A stretch of DNA of 64,000 nucleotides from Epithemia pelagica (Eukaryota > Protista > Bacillariophyta), in contig OX337240.1 in assembly GCA_946965045.2 (NCBI GenBank), positions 3,100,001-3,164,000 on the forward strand, read 5' to 3'. The stretch's first letter is position 1; each line of letters opens with the position of its first letter. Position numbers and translations under genes: made by a program. Positions 53,739 to 64,000 of the stretch are shown here, piece by piece. The notes beneath the pieces are model-generated. The model worked only from the letters and a program-made list of their open reading frames with translations, was not told the DNA's origin and ran no database searches.

Positions 53739-54322
53739 GGTGGTGGTCCCACACTAAACTCTTGCTCCGTTTTTTGAATGAGGGTTTGTTGGGGAACGAT
53801 ATAGCAATGTCTTGGGTATGGTATTCGGTACTCGTTACTATGCCCCGTTCCATGTGCCAATGTCCAAAGTCACTGGTTGGGCTGGGATCGATGAATCTTT
53901 GTTGGGCCTGACATGGCATCCGCGACCGATGTGGTTCCCACGACTCCCGTGTCAGACTGACGGATGGACGGACGCTGATGCCACGTGTCCGAACTGTGTT
54001 TGACGGGCACTGGGTCTGCCCGTGCGCCCTTTTTTCCACGGCTGTTGCTGTTGGTGTGATTGGTGGAAGCCGTTCTGCCCTTGAGATGGTTCCTCTTGAA
54101 CTTGAAGGGCGTTTGGTTCCGTTCGTGTGGTTCTTCATGGCGTGGTCGGTTTGGCCATGTTCTGTTTCACATTGCCTCTTTTCTTGTGTCGTCTTGTGTG
54201 TTGTGTTCCCCCATTCTTCTTCTTCTCCTGGTTAGAAGAGCCACCAACGATACAAACCCAACCCAGAGGACACTGCTGGGTTGAAAAAAGAGGTCCAGAA
54301 ATACTACTCGAGTGGTAATAGA

Positions 54323-54715
54323 ATGGCGTGGTTCTGTTGTGGTTCTTCTTCATTATCATCGTCGTCATCGTCGTCATCGTCTTTTTGGACTGGAGGTTGT
54401 CGTCGTGGAGTCTGGATGATACTCAGTGTGGTGTGGACGACCACGGGCTTGATGCGCATGGCCGTGGGGGCCGCAACTACTCCTCCTGGTGCGACTACGA
54501 GTGCGGAATCGCCGCCAGTATCATCCTCCTTCTTGCCAACCACACGGCCCGTTCCATCATCATCGTTGGCCGACGAAACGAGATTACCACCTTCTGTTGC
54601 TTCTTCTTCCTTTCAGAATGTCAAGCGAGAACCAAAGCAACAACCACAACAAGAACAAGAACAACAACCGGAACAGAAAGAAGAAGAAGAAGAAGAAGAA
54701 GAAGAAGAAGAAGAA

Positions 54716-54752
<37 letters not shown>

Positions 54753-57700
54753 TCGAGTTGGAGGAACCAGACAAGGCTCCGTCCTCTTCTGCTTCTGCTG
54801 CGTCTTTGTTGACACGTGCACCACATTCCAAAGGACCAACGTTCCACGATGACAACGACAACGACGAAACCACCAGGAATCCTTCTCGACCAGACGCTTC
54901 CTTGTCACATTCTTCCTCATTACCATCCTCCTCATCATCCTCGCCACCCCTCTTGATTGTGTGTTTGGTCGATGGAAGCCTCTATGCCTTGAATGCCTGG
55001 ACCGGAGAATTGCAATCCTCCTACTCGGCCGGTCCCCCCTTGGTACAACAACCACAATCACAATCGCAAGCACAAGCACAACAGTCGTTGGATGATGGGG
55101 AACAACAAGAACAGGACTGGGAACCACAACAAGAACATGAACATGAAGAAGAAGATTGGGAGGACAATGACGACGAATTTTGTAATTGGGACAGTTGGGA
55201 CTACCAAATGGAGGACGACAACAACGACAACATCCATCTGGAGGACAATCCCAATCACCACCAACAAGAACAGGACGAGGATCCGATCCATGACTCGACG
55301 ACGACGACGACGACGACGACGACTTCAGATGCCCTTCGCATTCATCCAGGGTTGGATGGTCAATTGTATTATTGGCAACCAGCATCTCACCACCATTCCA
55401 ACCATGACGACCATGACAATGACCAACACGATAATGATGGGGTCTTGCAACCCCTACCGCTGTCCATGTCCTCCTTGTTGGAACATCCCGTGCAAACCTG
55501 TTCTTCCACGACAACGACAAGTCGCAAAAAGGAGTGTGGCATTTTGACAGCATCCGTGGCCCAAACTACCTTGCTCGCCGTTGACGCCACGACGGGAGCC
55601 TTGCAATGGACCAGTCACAGTCATGCTCCATCCAATACCAATGGCAATGCCAATCCGGAACCAGTTCGGAAGGACAACGATTCGTCCACACCCGCCGTGT
55701 TGCTGCTCCAACGCAAAGATTTGGTCGTCCAACACGTGTCCTTGGCCACGGGACAGTGCTTGTGGAATGTCACGGTGGGATCCTATCAAGCCATTGACTT
55801 TTCAGCAGCCACTGAGAATGCCCCCCGAACCTCTTCCTCGGCACACGTTCCGCTCTTGAAATTTGCCAAGGGCGGTCGTGCCCTGTACGCCTTGGCAGCA
55901 GCCCCCGAGGAGGAAAACGACGAGGCATTCAAAGTCTTGTGGAAGATTGAATCCCCACATGTCGTGGCATCCGTCTTTGGCATGAATCGCCAGCAATGGC
56001 AACCGATTCAAGTCTTGCAGGAGGATGACGACGAAGAGGAGGAGGAAGAAGAAAAAGACAAACCCAACACTCCACCACAAGACAAGAATGGCGAATGGAA
56101 CGAGGCTTTTACCAAGGGTCCATGGACCAGATTTTTGCCAGCCTCGTCTTCTTCTTCTTCTTTCTCCTCTTCCTCCTCCTCCTTGTTTTCGTCCTCCTGG
56201 ATAGACTCGTGGCGACAAGAACAACAACAACAACAACAAGGCAGATCGCAAGCACTCTTGTCCTTGCCGGCAGGAGAGCCTCAACAAGAGCGTTCCGGCG
56301 ACTCGCACCACACCCAAGACTCTACCAATCCACTCAACAAGGTCAACCACAACAACAACAACAACAACAACGAACCACAACCGGATGCGGATCCGTTGCA
56401 ATATTACCACTTTCATCCGGGGCACTGTCGCAATGGTGCGACGGGAACCACCTGTCTTGCGTCCTTTGCCACTTCACCACCGTCACCACCAATCACAACG
56501 CCATTCTCGACGAATCTAGTACAGCAACAACACGAACAACACGAACAATGGATGCAAGCGACTCGGAGAGGGATTGTCCTAGTGGCACACTTGTTGGTAC
56601 TGGTAGGAGGCGTGTTGTTGTGGAAACGGCGACGACGACGCCAACAGTCGCAGTCGAGAACCACAACTAGTCATCACACGTTTGCCCCGGGGATTCGGTC
56701 CGTGTCACTCGAGGCATTGGCCGAATCCTCGTCTCGGTCACATGGTCCATCCAGCAGTATCAGCTTTCCAGGAGCCATTCCCACACGTTCCAAAAACAAC
56801 CAGCATGTCCCTCCAACAACCACCGAAGCAGAATCACTTCTGGAGGACCCGCAGGGCAATTCCGGAACAGTCCCAGAACCGCACGAGTCCAAAAATAGTG
56901 TCAACGCCACTTCCAGTGACGCCTCTGCCGCATCAACAACCCCCAAACCCCCAGTCGTGGACCAGGAGAACGTTCCGGCTCGGCCTGCTGCGGCCACGGC
57001 CGTGATTCCGCATCCAACCGGGGAGGGTACCTCCACAGTTCCCCTCGTTCAATATGCCCGCTATGCCTCGGAATTTGAAGAGTTGGAATCCTTGGGTCAG
57101 GGTGGATTTGGCAGTGTCGTACGGTGTCGGAACAAATTGGATGGTCGCGATTATGCCATTAAAAAGGTCATGTTGCGAGGACCGGTCCAGTCGTCGTCGG
57201 AGCAGCAGCAGCAGCAGCAACCGGCCTGGGCGGCTCGCAACGCGCAATGGCGCTTTCAACAAGAATTGGCTCGTGTCTTGCGAGAAGTCAAAATTTTGGC
57301 CGTCTTGGATCATCCCAATATCGTTCGATACTTTACCGCATGGTTGGAAATGGATGTCGAATCGTCGTCGTCGACAACGACATGCTCCGAGCAGCCACCT
57401 GGCTCGACTCGTGGCAAGGATCCCAACGAGGAACGGAATAGTAGTCGAGTCGAACAGGATTTGTCCAGTGTCTTGTCCTCCCGACAACCAGGCACTGGCG
57501 AGACTCCAAGTCATCAAGCGTCCTCCTCCATGTGGCGTTCTCGTTTGGGTGGTCGATGGGTACAATCCAATGTTAACACACCATCTTGGACGACAAACGA
57601 CGAGTCCTCCCTCCGGTACCGACCAAACAATAACTCATACTCCACCACTGCTGCATGGGAAGATCAACAACGGGCTGCGGCCGCCATTGCCGCCTCGTTG

Positions 57701-59314
57701 GGAGATGCCGCCGAGGAATGTGGCATTATTTTTGAAGACAGTAGCCGTTGCACGGGTGGTGATAATGGCGATAGGGATACTGGTGATGGAACTGACGAAA
57801 AGGCCTCGGTCTTGTCGTCCTGTCACAAACGACTGGCCTACCATCATCATCGCTCGGAGCAACTATCCGACTCGATGGATGCCTCCTCCGCCGGTGTGGA
57901 AGAAGAGGCATCCAAACATCAGGCACGATCGAACGACACTACACCACAAGTCGTAAATGACACGGAAACCACGCCGATTGTACAGCATACCTTGTATATT
58001 CAGATGCAATTGTGTCGATTCGAAACGATTGCCGACTTTTTGCGCAACAAGGAGGCCCGCAAGGGACGCACTGCGTCTCGTAGACGACGACGATCCAGCA
58101 GTAGTCACAACAAGGTGGACATTCCTCTGGCTCTTTCCCTCTTGCTCCAAATTTCCAAGGCCGTACAACACGTCCATGAGAAGGGACTGATTCATCGAGA
58201 CTTGAAACCCAGCAATTGCTTTATGGATACCTTGGGTGTCGTGAAAGTGGGCGATTTTGGGTTGTCACGAGAAACTCACAACTCGGCGTCTTTGACCATG
58301 ACGGACCAAGACGACGACGACGAGTTGGCAAACCGAGAAACGACGGACGCTGCCATTGTGGCACAGCTGTTTGGCGATGCCCAAGTTTCCCCCACCACCA
58401 ACGACAACGAGTCCGCAGGAGCAGCAGCAGCAGCAGCGGCGGCTCCACCTACGATTGACCACACGGCTGGTGTGGGGACTCGCTTGTATGCATCGCCGGA
58501 ACAAACCGAAGGCTCCAGCTACGATTCCAGCACTGATGTGTATTCCTTGGGCATTATGCTCTATGAGTTGTGTTACCCCATGTATACGGGTATGGAACGC
58601 AACATTTGTTTGAGCAAACTACGACAACAACGTCAATTTCCCTTGGATTGGTCCACGGTGGTGGGACGCCCCTACAGCCAGCCGATTCAAGACTTGGTCC
58701 AGTCCATGTTGGATCCTCGACCCTCGTTGCGACCCAACGCGGCCCAAGTGGCCTGGCAAATCCAGCAAATCATGGGGGAACTCACCATTTTGTCTTCCCT
58801 CACGCGACGAAAAACGTCATTCTTGGCCGACGACGAACAGCAGAATGGCGAATCCAACACCAATGGCCACGACGACGACGACGATGTTGTCTTTCTCAAG
58901 GTGGAATCCCAAAATCCTGAAACGGCCTTGGCCCATGCCGTAACCCTGATCCAATCCTGGCCGCATTCCGGCGACTCGTGCCAACGACGACGACCACGCG
59001 TGGAAATTTTGCAGTCGGGCATGGCCCGCCAAGTGTGCACGGGTACGACCATTTTGGAGTTTGCCCTCGTGTTCCATCACCACCACCACAACCGTCGGTT
59101 GTGGTTGGACCCGGAGAAGAATACGGAAACCACGAGTCTGCAACAACAACACGACGTACCAATAGGAGCCGAGGAGGAGGAAGAGGAAGCTCTGGAAGAG
59201 GACTTGGTTCGGTTCCTGGAACAAGACTCGGATATTGTCCGCGTGCAAGCCATTTCGGCCCATCATGCTCATCCTTCGCAACCACCACCCAAGCCCGACA
59301 CGGTTGTGACTTGA
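54323..59314 (+). CDS. PERK-like transmembrane eIF2-alpha kinase
   Basis: Signal-like leader; luminal propeller-like blocks (VDGSLYALNAWTG, HPGLDGQLY, LLAVDATTG, WNVTVG); TM followed by KRRRRR. Kinase motifs [37 protein letters not shown], long insert, LYIQMQLC, HRDLKPSN, DFGLS and GVGTRLYASPEQ. Confidence 0.9.
54680..54748 (+). repeat. (GAA)12(GAT)11 coding trinucleotide repeat
   Basis: Encodes E12D11 in the kinase N-terminal region. Confidence 0.95.
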
Positions 59315-59799
59315 CCGTGTTGTTGTTGGTGATGGAGTCCAGGAAACGGTACTCCGTGTATACGTAACTCTTTACGTAATGGTTGGGTAGCACACGTTCT
59401 GCAATAGAGGTGGCGACAGTAACTGGGCCACACTACTAGTTACTAGGAGTAACACAAAGCACGTTTCACTTTTGAGCGCCATGTCTCGTCCCTGTGTTTG
59501 CCACCAAGGATCTACCAAGGAGCCAACCGAGATTTGGAAAAAAACGTGTGTGGCATTCAATGATAACGAACCACACGTCGTATTGGGCAAGCAATCGTGG
59601 TTGCTGCTCCTCTAGAGAGAGTAGGCGTCATCCACATAAACAGGAGCAACAGTACCTACTGGTACGGCATTAATCGTGTGGACACTGACTCTACGTACTA
59701 GGTGTATATACTGGATCTATCGTAGAGACGGGTAAATTGCAACCACGGTGTGTGGCCACTCTACAGCCGACTGGCCAAGTGTGTTTAGTCTCTAGTAGT

Positions 59800-60918
59800 T
59801 TATTCCAGTGCAGGTCGCGGGGCTTGTCCCTCAAAGACAAATTCGGCCGGCCCGGACATGTACACCTTGTTGTTGTCTTGATTCCATTCAATCCACAAGT
59901 CACCACCGGGCAAGGTGACACGACAAGGTTGGTTCGGCAGTGTCGTGGGAATTTTGCCGGCGCGACAAGCCGCCACGACCAAGGCACAGGTTCCCGTACC
60001 ACAGGCCAAGGTGGGACCGGCGCCGCGTTCCCAGACCTTCATGCGCAAATGTTGCGGTCCCAGGACTTGGACAAATTCGACATTGGTCTTGGCGGGAAAG
60101 AGATTGGTGGCCGATTCCAAGGCCGGACCATCCGTCGCCAAATCGACGTCGGTTTCGAGGTCGTCGACAAAGATAATGGCATGCGGATTGCCCATGCTCA
60201 CAGCCGAAATCTTCCATGTCTTGTCGGGATTGTTGGGCGCCACGACGGGCAATTCGACGACGGATTCGTTGTCAAAATTGGGTTTCAACGTGGTGGGAAC
60301 TTGCGAAGCTTGCAAAATGGGTTCGCCCATGTCCACCGTCACGGTTCCATCTAAGTTCAGGACGGGAACAATGGGACCCGCCAAGGTATGAATGGTATAG
60401 GAATCCTTTGTGGTTGTTGTTGTTTTGGCGTCCAAGGCTTGCAAAAACTTGGCCAAACAACGAATGCCATTGCCACACATTTCTGGTTCACTCCCATCGG
60501 AATTGTAAATGCGCATGGCACAATCAAAAGCGTCATTGGGGGATTGCAAGGCAAAAATGACGCCATCGCCACCAATGCCAAAATTGCGATGGCACAAGGC
60601 TTGACTTTCTTGGGGAGACAAGCTCGGTTCCAACTGGTCGCGATTGTCAATCAAGAGAAAATCATTGCCCAAGCCGTGGTATTTGGCAAACGCAATCATG
60701 TTGTTGTCAGTCGGCAATGTCGCATCCGCTGTGCTACTACTCGAGTCGGCGACCGAAGCGAACTGTCGAGTGAGACCACCAAACCGCAAGGAAGTCTGCT
60801 GCTGGTTGGTTCGAAGGGTCGTAAAGGATTCCACCAGCACGAGACTGGTGGATAGCGACAACCACAAGAGGGACCAGGGAGAGAAACGGTGGGCGGCAAG
60901 TCTGCTCGTAAGAGTCAT
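59800..60918 (-). CDS. dapF: Diaminopimelate epimerase, plastid-targeted
   Basis: FAKYHGLGNDF, NSDGSEPEMCGNGIRC, VSMGNPHA, NVEFV and WERGAGPTLACGTG. Signal peptide ending LVES-F (ASAFAP-like) then a Ser/Thr/Arg-rich transit peptide. Confidence 0.97.
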   Translation of the reverse strand: MTLTSRLAAHRFSPWSLLWLSLSTSLVLVESFTTLRTNQQQTSLRFGGLTRQFASVADSSSSTADATLPTDNNMIAFAKYHGLGNDFLLIDNRDQLEPSLSPQESQALCHRNFGIGGDGVIFALQSPNDAFDCAMRIYNSDGSEPEMCGNGIRCLAKFLQALDAKTTTTTKDSYTIHTLAGPIVPVLNLDGTVTVDMGEPILQASQVPTTLKPNFDNESVVELPVVAPNNPDKTWKISAVSMGNPHAIIFVDDLETDVDLATDGPALESATNLFPAKTNVEFVQVLGPQHLRMKVWERGAGPTLACGTGTCALVVAACRAGKIPTTLPNQPCRVTLPGGDLWIEWNQDNNKVYMSGPAEFVFEGQAPRPALE

Positions 60919-62386
60919 TTCGGCAGAGTGTTCTGGTTGTTGTTGGTATTACTATTGTGGTTGTTCCATTAGTACTTGAAAGAATGGACGACACATACAC
61001 AAGTGTTGTGGGTCTCGCTCAGATCTCTGGATGGAGATTTTGTGCGGTTCGACGACGAGAGTGACGTTCTATCACAAACGCAGACCCGCATTCGAGGAAC
61101 TTTGGTTGTAAAATGAAGTGGGAATGTCGCAAGGACATTCGATCTCAGCGTGTGGCACTGATGTCTGTGAATAGTTCCATCAACTATAAAACGAATCATG
61201 GTCCAAGGAGTAGTGATTCAGTCTGCTGGAGAGTTCTATTTCCGCGATATTTTACGGAGAGTCATTTGAGTGTGCAGATTTGATCCTATTTTGGCCTTAA
61301 TTTTTGTTGTATTTTTTCACATAGAATGGTTCTGAATTCTGAAACTAAAAATGTGCCCAGCCGAGGAGGGATTTTGACTAGTTTCATGTAGAAAAATCCA
61401 AACGAAAATCAGGTGATTTCATGAAACTAGAACACAAAATCGGACAGTCGCAACACTCAACAATCCTCATCTGTTCTGGAACAGAGAGACTCTGGATACC
61501 GCAGGACATTCCCTCTGACAGGACAAAGACACTCCCAAACGTCCAAGCCGAGAGACGAGAAACCACAACCTGCGACAATGGCGACGGCTGTTGTAGGGGA
61601 TGCCGGGCAGAAATTGGTCCGATCAGACCAATTTCCGGTCAGACATCTTGGAACCTGCCAAGCACGAAATAATGGTGGATACACAATTCCCTGTTCGAGC
61701 ATGGCACGGTGGTTCCACATTCCTGTGGCGCTCCTCTACAAGGAGACAAATACTGTGACGCTCCATTACAGGAACGAAAGCCAGTCACCCAACACTTTGA
61801 AACCAAAGCTCACGAGATATGAGTTGCCATGGAAGCAAACAAATTTCATTCGGCTCGCTTCGCTTCCTGGTTCCGTGGAGGACAGTGTCCGTGAACCTTC
61901 CTCCTCCAAGGCGGCCCGTACCATGGGAGGGCAGGATCCAAGTAAGGATGATACGGATGGATCTGTCCATTCATTCATTTGCTGCTCGTTTGGACGACGA
62001 CAACCAGAACGTATCCACACCTACTGCCGTCGGTTCCACGGATCATCCAGACTTGACCACTGCGGCAAATCGCCGAGAGCGCAATTGCTAGCTACCTAGC
62101 TTTTCAACAGGGAAAAGCTACATGCTCGCTTGGTCCGTGTGAGCGCAAGCGAAAAGGTCATTCCACAGATTTCTACTGCCAATGTGCAGCGGCTTTGCTC
62201 TCTGGCTAGACCTTTCATGGGGGACGGATGGAGGAGAATGACAAACGTTTGGATGGGCTAATACGCTGGGATCGAATCGACTCTACCGTAACAATGTGCA
62301 GTACGTGCGCGCAAGGCTCTGCTGGGACTAACGATCCTTGTATAATAGTATGGAGCAACCGCCGCAACGACACAAGTAGTAATTCT

Positions 62387-62570
62387 ACATCCGCTCCGCG
62401 GAGTGGGGAGGCACGAGGAGGGGCTATTGACTCCGAGAAGGGCAATAGCTCCGAGAAGTGGACCGCCTTCTAAATCCGCGTCAGCGGATTTGGCGGTCCA
62501 CGACGAGGAGCTATTGCCCGCCGAGGAGTCAATAGCCCCGACAAGTGCCCCCACGACCAGGAGGGGATGT
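62387..62570 (+). ncRNA. Candidate structured RNA: 184-nt rod hairpin with four repeated symmetric internal loops
   Basis: Hand-paired stems of 11, 10, 15, 13 and 10+8 bp. Loops GCGGA/GACCA, GAGGA/GACAA, GAGAA/GCCGA and GAGAA/GACGA. Transcription is not shown. Confidence 0.55.
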
Positions 62571-62780
62571 CGCTTGCTTCTATCACCTCCGAGTCCCCCC
62601 CTAATTAACTGTCACACTTTTTTCCCAGGACTGGTTTTTTTGCTCCGCACTATCTTTTTTAGCTCCGCACTTGCTCGCGTATGAGAGCGCGGCCGTCGCG
62701 GGCAATATAAGGCTATATAAGACGAAAATCCTACTTCCATTCCGAGGAGCTATAGTAGTATTAAGAACTCCCTATGTCTA

Positions 62781-62919
62781 GTCCCTTTTGAGGAGGGTCG
62801 CCCGGCGCGGAGGGTAGAATGACGAGGAGGGCAATGGTCGAGGAGGGCGCACGCCCGACAAGACAATTGCCCGTCGAGTCATTCTCCCGACAAGCCGGGC
62901 GCGCCCGACGCGAGAGGAC
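62781..62919 (+). ncRNA. Candidate structured RNA: second rod hairpin with the same loop motif
   Basis: Loops GAGGA/GACAA, GAGGA/GTCGA and GCGGA/GACAA, plus an imperfect GAGGA/GACGC. Stem sequences differ from hairpin 1. Confidence 0.5.
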
Positions 62920-62991
62920 GGCCAGACACAGGGAAGTAGTAAACTTACTCCCTATCAAGCTGTGTAGGTAGTGAGAAATTCCTGGAAGCCA

Positions 62992-63043
62992 TGTCACAAA
63001 GTGTCACACAAATGTCACACAATTGTCACACAAGTGTCACACA
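62992..63043. repeat. Five-copy 11-bp tandem repeat TGTCACACAAN
   Basis: Units start at 62992, 63002, 63013, 63024 and 63035. Confidence 0.92.
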
Positions 63044-63256
63044 TGAGAGGGAAACCGCGCGACTCGCACGAAACTACTTCCCGGTCGTACAAAAAATTCC
63101 TACTGTAGTATAAAAATGTGAGACGAACTACCTACACAGTCTGGTATGGAGTTAGTGTCTCACTTTCCGACCCTCCCAACAAGTGCCAACCCGAACAAGT
63201 CGTAGAAAAGTGATCTGCTTCACTTTGCTCAACAGGATGATGAGAGGCTGCCTTGG

Positions 63257-63700
63257 TTGCAGTGGACCAAGGCTTGGCGGATGGGAATGATTGGACATGT
63301 TGCCACCAGACAACTATTACATCGAGAAGGCAGTCGTTACACTGGTTTCCCGTCATTTGGTGATTTGGGCATGATAGTCGGTGTCATGGCCCACTTGTTT
63401 GTATACACATCACAAGAGACCTTGCTGCAGTGTAGCCCATGTATGCTGGCCAATCCACCATTGGATGGCCACACCTACAAGGATCGATTCGAGGGTGGGA
63501 CCATGATGAGTGGCTGTTGTTCCCTCGGGCAGCACCGAGCTGCAAGATGAGGGCCTTCTGGACTGACCGGAGGAACCAGCAACCACTCTACACATGTGTG
63601 TGCTGGCTCCAAAACAGGACGACAAGCATGGCAGAAATTAGGAAACAACAGCAGCCATGAAACGCAAGAAGACGACGGAACATCTGCGTGTCGAGGTCAC
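63257..63700 (+). pseudogene. Possible decayed non-LTR retrotransposon C-terminal fragment
   Basis: IGHVATRQLLHR...FPSFG and QSTIGWPHLQG/RF across a frameshift resemble C-terminal blocks I recall from algal non-LTR proteins. No RT motif seen. Confidence 0.3.
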
Positions 63701-64000
63701 ATGGAGCTCGAATAAAGTCTGACGACGAGGTTTCCTGATCAGCGAATGCAGAAGTTGAAACAGATACTGTAGATCCGAGATCCAGGTCCTGAAACTTGAG
63801 ATTGACAATCAAGGTAGTATATCCGTACGGTATGTCCGATTGTGCATCGAGTCTAACGTGGTAAGGGCAAACACTTCTGGAACAAGTGTCGTCCGTGTTA
63901 GGATCTTTGTACAAGGTGATTGCATCGCCTTGGCTACTGCTTTGTTCCCTGGCTTACACCTCCGCACCTCGGGAGGTCAGAAGTGTCAAGAAACGCACAA

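Follow-up and report, generated by a model that had tools for sequence, protein, structure and literature searches.

The hairpin described here (hairpin 2), found in the 64-kb stretch of DNA that was analysed (the window), is on balance best explained as the conserved fold of a mobile DNA element that is short, non-coding and high in copy number; this element would be Crypton-like and non-autonomous, with the hairpin as its cis-acting, strand-specific end structure. A companion rod, hairpin 1, would serve likewise in another element, distinct from the first (module A). Both rods lie in a 776-base insertion, which is a head-to-tail array of two modules, A and B (Table 1). To our knowledge, end recognition by Cryptons and other eukaryotic tyrosine-recombinase elements is essentially unknown, and their ends are called featureless save for a few repeated bases. 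The non-autonomous cassettes, their empty site, the GTNG/GTAG signature and the refutation of a two-domain reading of the locus are what is new here.

Table 1. Positions of the modules, hairpins, joining sites and neighbouring genes in the window
Feature	Position	Strand	Remarks
Open frame with protein kinase domain	54281–59314		1677 codons; neighbour of the insertion
Diaminopimelate epimerase gene	59800–60918	−	Neighbour of the insertion
Left site GTAG	62376–62379	+	Target-derived; single in the empty-site form
Module A	62376–62758	+	383-bp non-autonomous element with hairpin 1; copies at other loci
Hairpin 1	62387–62571	+	Rod with four CGNGNAG/CGNCNAG loops; 7 nt past the left GTAG
Module junction GTAG	62755–62758	+	Right end of A and left end of B; A homology stops at 62758, B of L046 begins at 62755
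Module B	62755–63155	+	High-copy element with hairpin 2; copies in L044–L046; raised read depth
Hairpin 2	62781–62919	+	Rod; loops 62790/62906, 62807/62889, 62824/62873 and 62840/62857; tip loop 62849–62852
Hairpin 2, imperfect loop	62790/62906	+	GAGGA/GACGC
Hairpin 2, stem		+	GCCCGGC/GCCGGGC
Hairpin 2, loop	62807/62889	+	GCGGA/GACAA
Hairpin 2, stem with bulged T	62812–62823/62878–62888	+
Hairpin 2, loop	62824/62873	+	GAGGA/GTCGA
Hairpin 2, 11-bp stem (stem 2)	62829–62839/62862–62872	+	One G.A
Hairpin 2, tip-proximal loop	62840/62857	+	GAGGA/GACAA
Hairpin 2, tip	62845–62848/62853–62856	+	GGGC/GCCC around loop GCAC (62849–62852)
Internal GTAG	62968–62971	+	The short B of L046 ends on the right here or close by
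Tandem 11-nt units with TGTCACAC	63000–63045	+	3–5 units per copy
B right end TTAG	63152–63155	+	Element-owned; L044 and L045 homology ends GGAGTTA(G/C)

Results

The insertion consists of two separate mobile modules

Contigs from four public runs were mapped on positions 58500–64000 for depth and joints. The segment 62377–63152 was identified as an insertion of 776 bases, for which an empty-site form was also found: in two runs position 62376 is joined directly to 63153, with 776 bases skipped and four bases (TAGT) fitting both sides. Read depth was 100–200 (approximately 175) in the flanks, approximately 7,000 over hairpin 1 and 72,000–90,000 from hairpin 2 to 63156, so that the insertion stands at 40–500 times the depth of its flanks and the two modules differ from each other approximately ten-fold. 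No open reading frame of note was present in 61000–64000, none lay within the element, and the 64-kb window contained no second copy of the insertion modules.

Copies elsewhere were reached through spurious open reading frames that run through the rods and are called "proteins" in an ENA assembly; these led to eight 20-kb loci (L044–L051). Three weaker protein matches (P0003, P0005, and P0006) were rejected as unrelated repetitive proteins, and a third frame, read across hairpin 2, gave no protein match. Module A occurs alone in L047–L051 and module B alone in L044–L046. The preliminary description had taken the two hairpins for a tandem two-domain scaffold spanning 62387–62919. At the eight loci A never adjoins B, indicating that the two rods are not domains of one unit, and this reading was abandoned in favour of hairpins carried by separate mobile modules.

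Four copies of module A are full (L047–L050), with 96–98% identity and unrelated flanks, and one is truncated (L051). These copies are too young to carry a covariation signal. Hairpin 1, with a fold z-score of −15, makes up 48% of the module. In L048, the copy lies within a copia pol gene, flanked by gag-pre-integrase and SH3 parts, and in L047 it interrupts a LINE, with the RT part before the copy and a stretch resembling RNase H, read by eye, behind it. The hosts themselves are a LINE with Exo_endo_phos and RVT_1 domains (L047:6009-10900) and a copia-type integrase region (L048:9626-13186). The copy in L049 is antisense to its host frame. Within module A, three T6–T7 runs directly follow hairpin 1, and a duplicated 17-nt unit at 62635–62671 consists of a T-run and then GCTCCGCACT.

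The copies of module B correspond to 62799–63154 in L044 (93% identity), 62896–63156 in L045 (97%) and 62755–62975 in L046 (85%). The homology of L046, a short form of B in which hairpin 2 accounts for 65% of the length, stops at 62975, past GTAG and TGAG. The tandem units number four to five in the window, three in L044 and four in L045; one extra TGTCACAC lies in module A at 62610–62617, and the insertion contains every one of the five TGTCACAC sites that the window has on its + strand. These units may represent a candidate protein-binding site. When the B ends are joined, GGAGTT/AACTCC and GTCTGG/CCAGAC pair across the joint and extend the fold (63139–63153 with 62767–62772 and 62922–62927), with stems of only 6 bp that are too short to serve as evidence. 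Moreover, near-identical pieces of module B (62799–63156) were recovered from marine sediment and biofilm metagenome runs (X5 and X6), indicating that the host or close relatives are present in such samples.

In the long-contig ENA assembly, two copies are rearranged, each with its breakpoint at the tip of a hairpin. In L045 (11166–11484), the 3' arm of hairpin 2 is inverted, joined at the tip (62849), and precedes 62896–63156; in L051 (10256–10368), module A is cut at 62488, 5 nt beyond the tip of hairpin 1. The tip breakpoints in these two loci hint at folding of the DNA itself. Among the read joints, two deletions likewise have their start or end at a tip (62849 and 62483), in graph-based contigs where an artefact is possible.

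Insertion occurs directly 3' of a target GTNG

The left 4-mers of the module A copies are GTAG (three copies), GTCG, GTTG, and GTGG, each followed by TA, so that the N of GTNG is represented by all four bases. The right end is constant and reads ...ATAGTAG in all copies; the right-end 4-mer is thus GTAG for A, and it is TTAG for B. Left and right 4-mers differ in three of the six A copies and in the array in the window. The empty site in the window carries the left version, GTAG, and not the right-end TTAG, indicating that the target is the source of the left 4-mer, and the element that of the right 4-mer. No inverted complementarity was found between the ends of module A, and between those of B only a 6-base subterminal match (AACTCC/GGAGTT).

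The same signature was evaluated on the interrupted reading frames. Deletion that leaves a single copy of the four bases reopens frames of 483 codons in L048, 365 codons in L047 and 498 codons in L049 (antisense), whereas deletion from GT to AG leaves the frames of L047–L049 broken. The element therefore inserts directly 3' of a target GTNG and itself supplies (G/T)TAG, without a true target duplication.

The right GTAG of A is the left site of B, and the short B ends at or near the internal GTAG, which suggests that GTAG is a recurrent joining point of the modules. Each inserted element brings a new GTAG, consistent with the origin of the A–B tandem. The right flank of the insertion (63157–63206) has the look of a decayed 3' arm of a rod (CAACAAG and CGAACAAG, 78% like 62537–62559) and ends at another GTAG. 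In addition, "TAG + 0–4 nt + TCTCAC" follows B in the window and in L046, and in L044 it comes 37 nt later. An older cassette may have served as the target, or the preferred site may be a longer one.

Several classes of element were rejected on these grounds. A MITE with terminal inverted repeats (TIRs) is excluded by the lack of TIRs and by the differing left and right 4-mers described above. SINEs and LINE 3' tails do not apply, as there is no tail and the T-runs in A would stop Pol III; the idea of a LINE 3' tail, suggested by the position of A behind the LINE RT frame in L047, fails because the LINE continues past the copy. The elements start with GT and end with AG, as introners would, but GT...AG removal breaks the frames and the L049 copy is antisense.

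Hairpin 2 folds into a rod with serial purine-rich loops

Sequence checking and folding located every feature that the preliminary description had assigned to hairpin 2 at its coordinates. The rod contains three clean 5 × 5 internal loops and one imperfect loop, separated by stems of 4–12 bp, and each loop has an outer closing C-G pair, an inner closing G-C pair and a central G-C pair. The + strand folded as RNA gave −89.7 kcal/mol (z = −7.8), a value that none of the shuffles equalled, and the − strand gave −71.3 kcal/mol (z = −3.8). With DNA parameters, which leave G.A pairs uncredited and penalise the loops in full, the + strand showed a modest gain over shuffles (z = −3.1). The + and − strands of the whole element fold with about equal stability. 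A scan of Rfam 15 returned no family, the best match being a chance hit to mir-1253 (22.6 bits vs. a threshold of 103, E = 0.37).

The loops follow a paired frame, CGNGNAG on the top strand and CGNCNAG on the bottom strand, whose oppositions (G.A / N.N / G-C / N.N / A.G) recur eight times on stems unrelated in sequence. As proposed earlier, seven motifs are clean, closed by C-G and with a central G-C (62397/62554, 62414/62539, 62434/62519, 62452/62501, 62806/62888, 62823/62872, and 62839/62856). A strict search of both strands of the 64-kb window, with both 7-base frames opposed and at least five pairs on either side, gave five hits, all within hairpins 1 and 2 (one of them a spurious cross-pairing), and none elsewhere. 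The mean over 200 dinucleotide shuffles of the window was 0.01, and 500 local shuffles gave 0. In 830 kb of unrelated fetched DNA, three lone paired-motif hits were found. A hairpin-pattern search of JGI metagenome contigs returned two chance coding hits only, and pattern searches of viral contigs and of bacterial and archaeal genomes returned chance hits only, none with paired motifs.

The rod structure is under selection

Comparison of L046 with the window copy, to which it is 85% identical, revealed three two-sided changes in stem 2: C-G to A-T at 62832/69, A-T to C-G at 62834/67 and T-A to A-T at 62835/66. All loop frames are kept in L046, and all of its broken pairs are G.A or A.G. The basis for covariation is three B copies, one of them diverged, and hence a single stem in addition to the stems compared inside the locus. 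A palindrome that decays neutrally acquires mainly G.T and A.C oppositions. The symmetric loops of the + strand contain 28 oppositions, of which 26 set a purine against a purine and would read as pyrimidine-pyrimidine on the − strand, indicating that the loops did not arise by neutral decay of an inverted repeat. Selection at the level of structure, claimed earlier from the constant loops and differing stems within the locus, is supported by these results and by the same pattern between copies. Furthermore, a loose-end consensus of many read contigs, whose arms possibly come from different copies, suggests a perfect basal stem of 9 bp in the most frequent B variant, at a place where pairing in the window copy is imperfect.

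Discussion

A mobile cassette with a proposed folded end structure

The rod would begin 7–22 nt inside the left end of the element, and only the + strand would be able to form its C-G-closed loops (G.A, N.N, G-C, N.N, A.G). Most likely, the fold is a cis recognition structure for a recombinase provided in trans by autonomous relatives, with a tyrosine recombinase as the candidate enzyme; the repeated purine loops may recruit this enzyme and signal which strand is held. In integrons, IntI chooses the strand through unpaired features of the folded attC sites. No recombinase gene was present in the window or in the eight loci L044–L051. The crossover site lies outside the rod, indicating that the hairpin is not itself the site of exchange. 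The insertion setting with its empty site points to a DNA strand, rather than RNA, as the folded molecule.

A wider proposal, which we put forward only tentatively, is that these cassettes belong to a class of eukaryotic transposons moved via a strand-specific folded DNA hairpin that is read by a tyrosine recombinase, as a counterpart of integron attC and CTX-phage sites. The serial G.A-closed 5 × 5 loops would then act as a strand-selecting landing pad, and minimal cassettes would be stacked head to tail at GTAG cores. If DNA folding of one strand is required, single-strand site-specific recombination, to date described in bacteria and their phages, would extend to eukaryotes. Minimal, high-copy and recently mobile cassettes that consist largely of one strand-specific fold define the cis needs and are compact substrates on which binding and recombination can be assayed. 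Moreover, the family inserts in genes and transposons, and its arrays can be mistaken for structured RNA loci.

Alternative explanations

A transcribed element whose purine-loop rod binds protein for export, packaging or regulation, or feeds small RNAs against the family, would account for the stronger signal in RNA folding, the strand bias in folding energy, the four G.U pairs in the + strand fold and the T-runs after hairpin 1. G.A-closed internal loops are classic protein-binding motifs of RNA. We nevertheless regard a role as structured RNA as unlikely: Rfam contains no match, and in the runs that contain the stretch coverage is even across genic and intergenic sequence, as is typical of DNA. 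The hairpins also sit within DNA insertions that have neither a poly-A tail nor variable duplications, and the T-runs lie inside module A, which makes the whole element unfit as a Pol III transcript. In addition, a role in RNA only would leave the hairpin-dominated minimal non-autonomous copies unexplained.

Several features of the insertion recall a single-strand "peel and paste" or rolling-circle transposon of the IS200/IS605 or Helitron-like type, in which an HUH-type enzyme would use the hairpin as a subterminal recognition fold. The element inserts immediately 3' of a tetranucleotide and does not duplicate it, the left site is target-derived and the right tetranucleotide element-owned, the hairpin is strand-specific and near the left end, and hairpin 1 has at its foot the sequence CTAC, the complement of GTAG. 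This mechanism is quite improbable given that no HUH gene was seen and that the rod is present at one end only. Helitron ends (5' TC, 3' CTRR, A/T insertion) do not correspond to GTAGTA... and ...ATAGTAG, and the position of the hairpin is close to the left rather than the 3' end, which excludes a Helitron proper; Replitrons have different ends and are undetected in diatoms (PMC10288648). Finally, palindromes do arise and decay in repeats, and the read joints at the tips, which were taken from graph-based contigs, are possible artefacts. A functionless, decaying inverted repeat or fold-back, or an assembly artefact, is nonetheless highly improbable as an account of the rod, as the window, a second assembly and environmental runs all contain the structure, the oppositions are purine-purine instead of the G.T and A.C expected of decay, the 7-base loop frame is repeated on unrelated stems, and the changes in L046 are compensatory.

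Comparison with known systems

The retroviral CTE is a rod hairpin with repeated, two-fold symmetric, purine-rich internal loops that are protein-binding sites. Hairpins 1 and 2 share with it the rod form and the repeated purine-rich internal loops. The CTE, however, is RNA of a retroelement transcript, whereas the hairpins described here carry a DNA-type insertion signature.

Elements of the IS200/IS605 family such as IS608 insert 3' of a specific tetranucleotide without duplication, have a different tetranucleotide of their own at the other end, and carry a strand-specific hairpin near the left end, as observed here. They differ in being prokaryotic, in having short hairpins at both ends and in using an HUH enzyme, none of which was found here. 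Integron attC sites (PMC2727003, PMC5027507) resemble the modules in that structure is kept and sequence is not, unpaired features select the strand, and cassettes are joined head to tail at a short core. In contrast to the modules, attC is a bacterial single site with R and L boxes, extrahelical bases, one central spacer and cleavage inside the fold. The genome looks eukaryotic, and the modules have four serial symmetric 5 × 5 loops and a junction 7–22 nt outside the rod; an attC site proper was therefore rejected, and the resemblance is one of logic only.

Cryptons lack TIRs and carry terminal direct repeats of 4–6 bp that are the presumed recombination substrate, and a CryptonS has been reported in a diatom (PMC3212892). 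The modules agree with this description in having no TIRs, no true target duplication, and a 4-base direct repeat at both ends of which one copy is left in the empty site, and the host group fits (PMC3212892). They differ in that the common CryptonS end is TATGG and that of the modules GTAG, in that no recombinase gene was seen in modules A and B, and in their long strand-specific purine-loop hairpins, of which there is no description for Cryptons; PMC3212892 nowhere uses the word "hairpin", and a literature search found no description of purine-looped rods at Crypton ends. Judged by the end signature, which the modules share, the closest family would be the Cryptons, namely CryptonS of diatoms and oomycetes, of which the modules are probably non-autonomous derivatives.
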